Origin: Paragordius varius
Taxonomy: Eukaryota; Animalia; Nematomorpha
Direction of reading: 5' to 3'
Assembly: GCA_964247055.1 (NCBI GenBank)
Contig: OZ176059.1
Coordinates: 2,294,001-2,358,000, forward strand
DNA: 64,000 nucleotides
Shown: positions 812 through 49,035 of the stretch, in pieces
Layout of the letters: every line of letters starts with the position of its first letter
Numbering within the stretch: position 1 is the first letter of the stretch
Notes under the pieces: generated by a model
The model's input: only the letters and a program-made list of their open reading frames with translations
Databases searched by the model: none
What the model was told of the DNA's origin: nothing
Program-made: the position numbers and the translations under genes

Positions 812-3800
812 CTTACAGTCATGTATCCTTTGTTTTATTAAAAATTTATTTTTTTTGCGTTAAATGGGTCGGTATAAATATTTGGTAAAGAATGAAAAAA
901 ACAAAGGCTCTATGGTAATTCTTATATATTTTTTAATAAATATCATATTGTTAAAACCATAGAGCTCTTGTTTTTTCCATTCTTTACCAAATAATTATAC
1001 CCCCATTTAAAGAAAGAATATAAATTTAATAAAAAATATATGACTGTAAATGAAAAATTGGAAGATACAGATATATAAAATAATATTTTATAACATCGGT
1101 TTTTGATACTATTAAATATATATATATATATATATATATTTATTCTTATGCGTTGAAATTACAACCGTATTATTTTTAAATAATAATAATATATACCATT
1201 TACAATTTCCAAATTCACCCTTGAACAAGTGAAATTTACTCTAAAAATCAATTATGAATTTTCGCGCGGTTAATATAACTTAAGATATGTTATTGAATAA
1301 AAAAATATATTGCTTTTACTATCCAGTATTTACTAACAAATTTCATTTTAAATAAAAATGGTTCTTTTTACAAATTTTACGTAGGACTTATTGGTTTTTT
1401 TAAGCTGGTAAATGGCAACATTTACTATTCTTTTTTCACCTAAAATAATATCGGTTATATTTTTATAAATTTCTAAGATAAATGTTTTTTTAAATTACAT
1501 AATTCATATATATATAAAATATAAACATATTAATATATTTATTTAATATTAATAATTGTTTTATTATTAATAATAATTTTTCCTTTCTCCATTTTAAGCT
1601 TTGTGCGAGTTCAATATACAGAGATGTGGATTCCTTTTTACCTTTTCCAAAATTATATAAATACTCGGTTTTGAATCCTTCGTTTCAGAATTGATATTCT
1701 TAAATTAAATAATTATACTCGGATAATCTTTCAAATAAAGGTTTTTCATATCAAAAATTAATAATTGCAATTTGATTTTCCAAGTTTATGTTTTAATTTT
1801 TCCAGATTCGAAATTATCGAACTTTACTTTGATTTGGTGTTTCATGTTGTTAATTTTTTTTCTGATTTAATATATGTTCAGATATTTGTCATTCATATTT
1901 TTAATTTCGACTTGTATTTATATATTATATGGATATATATATATATATATATATATTTATGTATCATTACTTTGTTTTTTTTATTGAGATTGTATAACTT
2001 TTGTTAAAAAATATTGGATTTTTTTCAAGAATGTTCCACAATTATATAACTTTCTTCGGTCATATCATTTTTGTTTGTGTAAAATATTTGAGTTTATATA
2101 CATTATAATGACCTTAATTTTATACTATAAACATTAATTGATAATATGTTGATGATGGCATATAGATTATCCGAGTATAATTATTTATAAAAAAAAATAG
2201 AAATTAAATCAGAAACGAAGGATTCAAAACCGAGTATTTGTTTATATAATTTTGGAAAGGTAAAAAGGAATCAATCCATTTACAAGGAACTCATATCTCT
2301 GCATATTGAACTCTCACAAAGCTTAAAATAGAGAAAGAAAAAATTATTATTAATAATAAAACAATTATTAATATTTATAAATATATATTAATATGTTTAT
2401 ATTATGTGATTTAACATTTATTTTATAGAAATTTTTTTATAACCGTATCCTTAAGTGAAAATAATAGTTTAGAATTTTGCCATTATTGATCTAACCCAAA
2501 TACTCAAGGATGGGCTAAAACGAGATTCAATTGTTCAAAAAAACAATATATATATTTTTGGTATATTTATGAATAAATGTGTGTATTAATAACTGCATTT
2601 GTAAAAAATGGGTAGATAATCGATGATATTTATTTTTCAATAGACGACTTTCTATTTTTATTATGAATATTTCAAACGCATTTTATAAATGAAATCGAAA
2701 ACAAAAAAAACAAAATGAAAATAAACATTTTACACACAATAAAGACTTAAAAGTACCTATTTTTATTCAATGTTTTTTTCAAAAAATGGTACATACCTAC
2801 TTTTTATTCAGCAGGCCCAATATCTTCATGGTATACTTTATTATTTTTTCCGTATTAGATAATTGATTTAAATTAAAATTTCATTTTTTTAAAAAATATA
2901 TAAAAAACATATAGGTAATTTTTAAACTTATCAAACACACATAATATATTTAACACTTCGATTCAAATTGGGGTATTTAAATACCCCGGACTAAATTTAA
3001 ATTAAAATTTTTAGAAAACTACTAAAGAAAACGGTCCCAATTTAAATTTATGCTTCTATCCTGATAAAAATTATATAAATATGCCAAAATATCTTGATAA
3101 AATTTTGTTTAGAAAAAAAAGTTCCACCTCAAACTACTTCGACGCCATTTTTATTTTACAAAAATTGTGCAAAATATCGTCTTCATTTAATTTTAAGGGT
3201 AAAACTAAAGCTTATTATATAAATTACATCTAACATGGATAGAAATAGAAAAAGCGGTTTATTTTGTATTATTTTTTAATTTTACAATTTGACACATGTC
3301 ACGTTGACTAAATTTTTACCTTAGTTTTAGCTCAAAATTAGTAATATCAAGTATTTTTAAATAAATTTTTTTATATATTTTGGTTTATTAATGTTATATA
3401 AGTGCAAAATTTTGCCATGGTTTCGATTGCTTCCATACTTTTTAAACTATTTGATTTTAAAGAGGCCTAGGGTATCCAACTACCCCAATTTGAATCGAAG
3501 GACTAAAATGAGTGTGTTGTATCCAAGTGTTAATGGATGAATTTGAATTGTTCGAGGGTGAATTAATTTAAAGTGTAAATGGTATGTATGGTATATTCTA
3601 TTTTAATTCAATTGTACAAATAACCACACAAGTTTTTTGTAATGATTAAAGTATATTTTTTACATTGGTGTTAAATTTTATAATAATAATAAAAATAATT
3701 TAAAATACTCCAATATATATTTGTTGTCCAAAATATAGTATAGATTTAAGGCACCACCATTAAAATTTGGGAAAGAAATCACACTACCAACAATAAAATA

Positions 3801-41577: not shown

Positions 41578-47174
<5,597 letters not shown>

Positions 47175-47625
47175 TATATTCTATAAGACATATATATAAA
47201 AATTTTTAAAACCAAAACAATAGAAGGCTAATTTGTATACTGTAAAATCTTAATTTTTTTGTTGCTAATTCTATTAAATAAGTGGCAAAATAGGTATTAG
47301 ACATGTAAATGAGTAACACACTCAATTTTATATTTAAAATTAAATCATTTATGTTTGTTAAAAAAAATCAAGAGATATTATCTTTATTTATTTATTTTTT
47401 TATTTACATTTTGTCTTTAAAATTTAATTTTGACTGTAAATTTATTATTTAATCAAATTTCCAAGAAAAATATACAAATAACCTTAACCGTGTTTTCAAT
47501 AAGAAAGGGGATGGGATGGTGGGATCAAAAATTGCAATGTTTCATAAAACAATATGTGTTTCAAACGAGATGGTTTGATGCTGGAGAACGTGTATTTTAT
47601 TTTATTTTAAAGATTTTTTATAGAA
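47175..47625. promoter_or_regulatory. Probable bidirectional promoter between TPI and ARPC5
   Basis: Divergent start codons only 451 nt apart, in a locus where other intergenic gaps are kilobases and repeat-filled. No MITE seen here. Confidence 0.6.
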
Positions 47626-49035
47626 ATGCCTGCTAAAATAATCGTTACTATGGAAACTAAAAACAATAATAATTTACAACAAAATAATGTGCCAGGCTCA
47701 CAGTTTCGAAAATTAGATATTGAAAATACTTTATCAGCCGAAAATTTTACCGATGATACCACTTTGATTGGAGAGGGGTGTCGCAAAACATTTGATGAAA
47801 ATACCTATAAACAAATGCTCCAAAGATAATTTTTTATATATTTTAATTTTTGTACTTTATGTATAATTATAGTAATTTTTATTATTTTAATTTTTTTTCA
47901 TTTATACTGGTCGGAATATAGATGCGTTAAAGTATTTACTCAATTTTGTACCAATTGGGATACGTGATGCAAATTATCGAGTATTTATTTTTTATTATGG
48001 CCATCTTAACATTAGGATAAAATTTTTAAAAGTGTCATGCAAACCGTATTAACATTCAAATCATCCGAAATCAATAATGCGCTCACCTCACTTAATCGCG
48101 AAAATTTGGATTATCTAATGAAATACATTTATAAGGGTTTCGAAAACCCAGAGCTTTATAATTGTCCACTCTTACTTAATTGGCATGAAAAGGTAGTGAA
48201 GAATTGTTTTATATTTACCTTTTAAACAATTATTCTAAAATATTTTAAATGTTTTAATATAAAAAATTACCTATTTTATATAAAATATTGCTTAAAATTT
48301 ACATAATACAGTTAAAAAATTACGCCGTAAAAGAAACATTCCTATCCTCGATTTGATTTATGTTTACCCAATATACAATTATATTTTAGGGTTTATTTGA
48401 AATGTTTAGGAGGTGAGATGTATGGTATAGTATTATTAAATAAGTTTACAAAGTGAGTTGTTTATAGTATCGTTATAATTTTTATACTAATCCTTTGTCC
48501 CGTATTTTTTTGCCAATGAATTGGATTAATTAATTTTTTGGGTTGATTTCTGCTTAAAACAATAGCTTTTAATTTTGGCTCCGGTCAGTTTTATTTTTAA
48601 TTTATAGAGCTTATTCTTGATATTTGAATGATTATATCAACATAAACATATAGCAAAAAAAATATTGTGTAAATTGGGTTAACATAGGCTATTGCATTTA
48701 AAAAAATATTATTGTTTAGAACCGCGCTTTCAGCGTTTTAAAACATTTTAAATCGTTTTGAATTTTTATGGTTACAAAGCAATTTTGAAAGAAAATTTTT
48801 AAACAAAAAAACATTTAAATATTCGTACTATTTTAAATTTAATGAAAAATAAAAAAAATGAAAAATACAGTTGAACTATTCTTTTAAAACTGTGGCTATT
48901 TATTTATAAATACTTTAATTTTTAAACTACATCTTTTTATCGTTTTTTTTACTGATATTTATTTTTTAGATCTTTAACATAACCGGTTATGGAAGTATTA
49001 TACGTGCCATGTCTGATCGCAGACGAATTGTATGA
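47626..49035 (+). CDS. ARPC5: Actin-related protein 2/3 complex subunit 5 (p16-Arc; 4 exons, about 171 aa)
   Basis: Exons 47626-47825, 47908-47980 (73 nt), 48016-48192 (177 nt), 48970-49035. Motifs FRKLDI, LMKYIYKGFE.P, LL.WHEK, GYGSIIRAM..RR. Intron 1 is AT-AC; intron 2 is 35 nt. The start could be the second ATG at 47650. Confidence 0.93.
47826..47907 (+). other. AT-AC intron (ARPC5 intron 1, 82 nt)
   Basis: Junction CAAAG|ATAATT...CATTTATAC|TGGTCGG gives MLQS-GRNIDAL. Phase 2, followed by a 73-nt exon. Confidence 0.85.

Follow-up and report, generated by a model that had tools for sequence, protein, structure and literature searches.

The window analysed here, a stretch of 64,000 nucleotides of hairworm (Paragordius varius) DNA, belongs to a eukaryotic assembly of 110.5 Mb in 44 contigs and is very AT-rich (GC about 24%). 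It contains a four-exon ARPC5 gene on the forward strand, beginning at position 47626, and, head to head with it at a distance of about 450 bp, the TPI gene on the reverse strand (exon 1 at 46944–47174). In each of the two genes one intron appears to begin with AT and to end with AC, both lack the marks of U12-type (minor) introns, and their ends are similar, AG/ATAA(A/T)T...TATAC/, where a slash denotes the exon–intron boundary. The features are listed in Table 1.

Table 1. Features of the ARPC5/TPI locus (positions in the window), ARPC5 intron 1 in orthologues, and minor-spliceosome RNA genes of the same genome
Feature	Position	Strand	Description
ARPC5 exon 1	47626–47825	+	ATG to ...CAA AG; ends in phase 2; FRKLD motif and ...DENTYKQMLQ
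ARPC5 intron 1	47826–47907	+	82 nt; AG/ATAATTTTTT...TTTTTTTTCATTTATAC/T; putative AT-AC; T-rich 3' end; U12 5' splice-site and branch-site motifs absent
ARPC5 exon 2	47908–47980	+	73 nt; 1 nt + 24 codons, GRNIDALKYLLNFVPIGIRDANYR (codon block 47909–47980); L022, L021 and L026 agree in length and phase
ARPC5 intron 2	47981–48015	+	35 nt; GTATTT...CATTAG; ordinary small GT-AG intron
ARPC5 exon 3	48016–48192	+	177 nt, 59 codons; P16-Arc profile positions 72–130; ends ...WHEK, as orthologues do
ARPC5 intron 3	48193–48390 (boundaries tentative)	+	GT donor at 48193; TTTTAG acceptor, AG at 48388–89
ARPC5 exon 4, coding part	48391–48456	+	VYLKCLGGEMYGIVLLNKFTK, 21-codon block; stop TGA at 48454–56; weak similarity to ARPC5 C-terminus V..GG.G.IVRVL
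Best GT-AG alternative to intron 1	47780–47921	+	T/GTCGCA...AATATAG/; removes 21 residues, including homologous exon-1 end and GRNID of exon 2
TPI AT-AC intron	41860–43812	-	1,953 nt; GAG/ATAAATATTT...TATATATATAC/GAT; U12 marks absent
L022 ARPC5 intron 1			67 nt; AA/ATATCCTTTT...TTTTTCCTTAATACCACTATCAC/A; textbook U12 AT-AC
L087 ARPC5 intron 1			66 nt; U12 AT-AC
L090 ARPC5 intron 1			132 nt; U12 AT-AC
L088 ARPC5 intron 1			Donor only, ATATCC
L089 ARPC5 intron 1	1692–2249		558 nt; CA/GTATCCTTTTCA...TTTTCCTTAATAGTTTTCAG/G; U12-type GT-AG
U6atac	G000 C2:4857045–4857187 (L001)		Rfam model, 66.3 bits
U11	G000 C5:11395495–11395742 (L003)		Rfam model, 62.7 bits; 248 nt, large insertions in two stems
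U4atac	G000 C4:4407422–4407525 (L002)		Rfam model, 50.7 bits, just below cut-off; short
U12 candidate	G000 C5:10606515–10606665; L004 1377–1527 (-)		Pattern search; 34 bits; diverged, consensus 5' end

The open frame from the ATG of ARPC5 exon 1 reads MPAK...SQFRKLDIEN...DENTYKQMLQ. Profile and PDB searches were made exon by exon, not on the joined protein. Exon 3 matched the Pfam P16-Arc family (PF04699) with an E value of 3.4e-17, and ARPC5 and ARPC5L chains in the PDB with E values of 1e-12 to 1e-13; exons 1, 2 and 4, searched singly against Pfam and the PDB, gave no significant family match and are recognizable only through alignment with orthologous exons. In the whole genome the P16-Arc profile matches this locus and no other, so a second ARPC5 copy was rejected, and ARPC2 is also present in the genome. 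As a single-copy gene in a genome that retains ARPC2, ARPC5 should be functional. Intron 3 somewhat lowers our confidence in full function. Its donor (AAG/GTAGTG), joined to the TTTTAG acceptor, leaves exon 4 one base off the conserved C-terminal frame (VYLKCLGGEMYGIV...); an extra G follows TTTTAG, and plain GT-AG splicing would give ...WHEK-GLFEMFRR-stop. The C-terminal frame needs either GT..GG termini (to 48390) or a weak AG at 48332–33, which adds 19 residues. The GGG at this acceptor is the same in independent contigs and is therefore not an assembly error. Either ARPC5 is partly degenerate, or splicing in this genome is more permissive than assumed.

Left unspliced, exon 1 meets a stop (...CAA ATG CTC CAA AGA TAA). 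We enumerated all in-frame, stop-free donor/acceptor pairs between exons 1 and 2, and among those with recognized terminal classes only two keep both the homologous end of exon 1 and the start of exon 2. Both are AT-AC: 47826–47907 (82 nt, ...MLQ-S-GRN...) and, from a second possible AT donor at 47829, 47829–47907 (79 nt, one residue more). All GC-AG pairs and the GT-AG pairs, the best of which is listed in Table 1, were rejected, with at least 21 orthologue-aligned residues lost in each case. The 82-nt intron, ATAATTTTTT...TTTCATTTATAC, has AT at 47826–27 and AC at 47906–07, the termini of the AT-AC II class. The original prediction, drawn up from the letters of the window, had described exon 1 as running into TAA unless spliced in this way, the splice as yielding MLQ-S-GRN with a 73-nt exon 2 and a 177-nt exon 3, and the GT-AG alternative as costing about 20 conserved residues; all of this held, the last figure being 21. 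The length and phase of exon 2, which it had matched to the human gene, recur in three other species (L022, L021 and L026). Exon 2 of the window aligns with theirs ungapped over 24 of 24 columns, with A6, L7, L11 and P15 invariant, and at the end of exon 1 the sequences likewise line up flush (FDENTYKQMLQ in the window, PDPNEVESLLN and PDENEWKRLVD elsewhere). Given these flush alignments, intron 1 is a phase 2 intron in all of them and interrupts the codon that precedes the first G of exon 2 (an M in L026).

The letters at the two ends are reproduced in other material: the acceptor is matched with no differences by an independent genomic contig from another sample (run X4, record 15, covering 47904–48199), and the donor is spanned by a contig of run X3 (47506–47841) for which no difference is listed there. 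An assembly error at the intron-1 termini, or at GGG 48389–91, was rejected on this agreement. It is conceivable that the intron is real and has other ends, being either the 79-nt version (...MLQRY-GRN...) or a form with both boundaries shifted by 1–2 nt (AG..AT, GA..TA or TA..CT); each of these gives an in-frame, stop-free product, and intron 3 of the same gene resists GT-AG splicing too. We nevertheless consider such ends improbable. The AT-AC reading is preferred because the orthologous introns described below place A1/T2 and A(-2)/C(-1) at exactly 47826–27 and 47906–07; moreover, the 82-nt version reproduces the orthologous residue spacing, and AG/ATAA fits the local donor consensus much better than TA/ATTT. 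We infer that ARPC5 intron 1 is a real intron with AT-AC termini, with the junction as drawn.

A different explanation is that the gene itself is decaying or encodes an altered protein, the intron being retained, with a truncated product, or the GT-AG pair 47780/47921 being used, with the loss of 21 residues. Two of the three ARPC5 introns are non-canonical, and exons 1, 2 and 4 are too diverged for stand-alone matches. There is also a parallel in human ARPC5L, where cryptic U2-type sites flank the minor intron (PMC3958305) and cryptic U2-type splicing deletes 27 residues when minor splicing fails. Against this, the locus is the only P16-Arc locus in a genome that has ARPC2, and exon 3 shows good conservation (E 3e-17). 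Every exon retains an open frame, although in this genome a random frame hits a stop within about 11 codons, and the residues lost under the GT-AG option align with orthologues. Decay or an altered protein therefore seems rather unlikely to us.

The site of intron 1 has a clear history as a minor-intron site. Fragments of ARPC5 exons on metagenomic and Logan contigs were found by word search with a 69-residue reference, and the DNA was then examined. A word search with the exon-1 open frame of L022, a bona fide ARPC5 gene, gave 165 exon-1 fragments from genomic contigs, of which the 119 with FRKxD were counted. In 105 of the 119, exon 1 reads through at the same codon position into YP followed by F, L, Y or C, which corresponds to xx/RTATCCT; the pattern at the orthologous exon end is ...LL[NQ][KQ]/YP[FLYC]. 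The remaining 14 run directly into exon 2, the intron having been lost. Loss of the U12 intron with intron 2 kept (and read through) is seen in about 14 of the 119 fragments, namely P0080, P0089, P0094, P0096–P0098, P0105, P0117, P0120, P0123, P0124, P0126 and P0127. Five orthologues were followed as DNA and all have textbook U12 introns, four AT-AC (three in full, one by its donor only) and one GT-AG (L089), so that both U12 subtypes occur at this site; an ordinary GT-AG intron of 52 nt occupies it in L026. Human ARPC5 (PMC3728624) and ARPC5L (PMC3958305) are reported, at the gene level, as minor-intron genes; no ARPC5 entry naming the human minor intron turned up in the supplementary files of PMC3728624, PMC7367187 and PMC2831892. 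An ancestral minor intron at this site, and the minor-intron status of the two human genes, had both been put forward in the original prediction; the fragments and the four of five AT-AC orthologues uphold the former, and the literature, at gene level, the latter. The window intron shares with the U12 AT-AC introns of L022, L087 and L090, and with the human minor introns, its position, a phase 2 site within the codon that precedes the G of G..(D/E)AL. It shares with those of L022, L087 and L090 the AT and AC end bases and a similar size (66–132 nt in these, 82 nt here). It differs inside: the orthologous introns carry ATATCCTTTT and a TT(T)CCTTAAT element 9–12 nt from the 3' end, whereas the window intron carries ATAATTTTTT and no branch-site box.

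The minor spliceosome is kept in this genome and is canonical. U11, U6atac and U4atac are present, together with a probable U12 (Table 1). The Rfam U12 model gave no match in the whole genome; the candidate was found with a typed 25-nt pattern and scores below the 53-bit cut-off, but over its first 30 bases, the branch-site-binding AAGGAAA among them, it follows the consensus almost throughout. The 5' end of U11 (AAAAAGGGCU) and the AAGGAGAGA box of U6atac are unchanged. Searching with a pattern for short U12 introns of the AT-AC kind gave 15 matches as against 5 in a reversed control. One of the 15, a textbook U12 AT-AC intron of 61 nt (ATATCCTTTTT...TTTTCCTTAACATAAGTAC), splits an RRM of the SRSF10 type at GFAYV/QY and has an open frame on either side. 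The snRNAs and the SRSF10 intron leave a loss of the minor system without support.

The recognition elements of that system are missing from ARPC5 intron 1; the absence of ATATCCTT and TCCTTAAC, noted from the first, stands. In place of /RTATCCTT the donor reads ATAATTTT, with A at +4, T at +5 and T at +6, and agrees with TATCCTT at four of the seven positions after +1, as ordinary GT-AG introns of this genome do. No TTCCTTAAC-like element lies about 9–15 nt from the 3' end; the best match to TTCCTTAAC is 5 of 9, at 17–22 nt from the end, while 52 local introns have a median of 6 of 9; for both elements the intron lies within or below the range of these ordinary introns. By comparison, the introns of SRSF10 and L022 match the full ATATCCTT box at 8 of 8 positions and have branch sites of 9/9 at 9 nt and 8/9 at 12 nt. 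Could intron 1 still be U12-type, with very degenerate signals in which drift from C to T has left G-U wobble with U11, U6atac and U12? Its AT-AC ends lie at an ancestral U12 site, the minor snRNAs are there to act on it, and ATAATTTTTT could pair, through U-G and U-A, with the U11 5' end AAAAAGGG. We think it unlikely, since the intron resembles the U12 5' splice site and branch site no more than background, nothing resembling a branch site lies 9–15 nt from the 3' end, the recognition regions of the snRNAs are canonical with no compensating change, and verified U12 introns of this genome, as well as those of equally AT-rich orthologues, keep exact ATATCCTT and TTCCTTAA followed by C or T.

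The comparison set for major-type features was 52 uniquely placed GT/GC-AG introns of this genome, from CCT, kinesin and proteasome genes. Their donors follow the consensus (A/T)AG/GT(A/T)(A/T)(A/T)T; G occupies +5 in only 15% of them, and GTTTTT, GTAAAT and GTAATT are the commonest forms. Local acceptors are T-rich and end in TAG. Scored on the local U2-type matrix with +1 left out, the donors of the ARPC5 (AAG/ATAATT) and TPI (GAG/ATAAAT) introns reach 6.9 bits each, where the mean is 3.2 and the standard deviation 2.4. The ARPC5 donor is thus a good U2-type fit apart from +1, which is the donor criterion for AT-AC II introns in PMC1557818. The 3' end, TTTTTTTTCATTTATAC, is T-rich, as is most non-coding DNA at 24% GC. 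Introns in the same gene families vary greatly in length, from micro-introns of 21–27 nt (e.g. L070, GTAATCAAAATTATTATTTAG) to more than 3 kb; the stops inside profile matches that enter a count of micro-introns are mostly read-through at match edges.

Our working hypothesis, which we regard as probable, is that ARPC5 intron 1 is a U2-type AT-AC intron whose direct ancestor was a U12 AT-AC intron. As it looks like a local major-type intron apart from its end bases, it is most likely removed by the major (U2-type) spliceosome. This ancestor would have been the U12 AT-AC intron that most of the other animals sampled have at the same codon position. Its internal U12 signals, namely the ATATCCTT box at the 5' end and, 9–12 nt from the 3' end, the TTCCTTAAC branch site, would have decayed in this lineage. 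The terminal A...C would have been kept while the boxes drifted towards A/T, with A replacing T4, T replacing C5 and C6, and the branch box lost. The drifted donor may have been usable by a local major spliceosome already accustomed to GTWWWT donors. The present form would then amount to a local major-type intron in which A has replaced G1 and C the final G, having exonic AG, ATAATT (compare GTAATT and GTAAAT), a T-rich tract, and TAC for TAG. As in AT-AC II introns, an A1–C(-1) pair would stand in place of the usual G1–G(-1) contact. In major-type splicing, an intron-initial A is known to be rescued when the intron also ends in C.

U2-dependent AT-AC introns are documented and very rare, making up 0.003–0.008% of introns (PMC1557818), with 15 known in human, 6 in mouse, 3 in fly and none in worm and plant (PMC1557818). 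The ARPC5 intron has the same AT-AC termini and an otherwise major-type 5' splice site, as do the human SCN4A/SCN5A and TAF2 introns (Sheth et al., 2006; PMC1557818), and, like AT-AC II introns (PMC1557818), it lacks the U12 box and the U12 branch site. It differs in three respects. In the U2-type AT-AC introns known so far +5 is G (PMC2831892), whereas it is T in ARPC5 intron 1; this speaks against our reading, but +5G is rare in this genome (15%) and its major-type donors mostly do without it. U2 dependence is experimental for SCN4A/5A and is here deduced from sequence. Finally, unlike the known AT-AC II cases, the ARPC5 intron occupies an orthologous site that is demonstrably U12-type in many other species. 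Introns converting from minor to major type are generally taken to go by way of a GT-AG form. The usual route, attributed to Burge et al., is a subtype switch from AT-AC to GT-AG followed by conversion (PMC2831892), and all 87 of the 87 conversions observed by Lin et al. (2010) ended as GT-AG, with no direct AT-AC case (PMC2831892). The same authors proposed a 'rare pathway from AT-AC U12 to AT-AC U2-type' (PMC2831892), which has been a proposal only, based on a few vertebrate sodium-channel introns. The pattern it predicts, with the ends kept and the internal U12 signals giving way to a major-type context, matches what is found here. Their scheme, based on those introns, supposed that C was replaced by G at +5, while ARPC5 would have moved through A/T-rich donor positions to a donor lacking +5G. 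With the ancestral state recorded in more than 100 orthologues and a canonical minor spliceosome retained, ARPC5 intron 1 would be a clean natural example of a change of spliceosome with unchanged ends. There is also a warning for annotation, as models for this genome that allow GT-AG introns only will drop 21 residues of ARPC5 and part of TPI.

How common such introns are in this genome was addressed with 64 pairs of adjacent exons anchored by profile coordinates in CCT, kinesin and proteasome genes, the proteasome search contributing few adjacent pairs. GT/GC-AG solutions were obtained at zero residue offset for 49 and at an offset of one for 7; the other 8 were canonical at a larger offset or when resolved by hand (L063), except for L069, for which no clear solution emerged. 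None of these 64 homology-anchored introns required AT-AC. At a true frequency of 8% the chance of this outcome is about 0.005, and the 95% upper bound on the frequency is about 4.7%; the original prediction had extrapolated from two cases to a genome-wide class of 8%, and this is not supported. No further AT-AC case occurs in this unbiased sample, so that an ability of the local major spliceosome to use AT-AC introns is not established. It had also been allowed that a background frequency together with an intact canonical U12 system would reduce the two introns to curiosities. The intact U12 system leans that way, whereas two cases in adjacent genes are far above 0.003–0.008% (PMC1557818), and if such introns are no commoner here than in other animals, their occurrence in two head-to-head genes lacks an explanation. 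It is possible, although we think it doubtful, that the lineage has an AT-AC class of its own without U12 marks, its major spliceosome, with weak GTWWWT donors and tiny introns, being tolerant of A1...C(-1). If so, the class might make up perhaps 0.1–3% of introns, orders of magnitude above other animals, and would draw its members from two sources, decayed U12 introns (ARPC5) and former GT-AG introns (TPI). A literature search on intron features of hairworm genomes returned nothing relevant.

Some minor observations concern the sequencing runs and the wider genome. Runs X3, X4 and X5 are genomic contigs covering the introns. Run X5, which bears a different organism label, contains pieces of the ARPC5/TPI locus at low depth with no differences, and could represent a host or a mixed sample. 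Run X6, which has the same species label and is guessed to be RNA, includes a highly covered TPI contig that is alike over only 37 nt with 3 mismatches, and either its label or that of the assembly may be wrong. Contig depth rises to hundreds to thousands of times that of neighbouring bins at 43200–43760, 44322–45256 and 46192–46565, with many back-and-forth joints; these stretches are high-copy repeats in and beside the TPI introns. In the whole genome, an exon-wise search recorded at least about 11 kinesin-motor loci and at least about 8 myosin-head loci, which is small for an animal.
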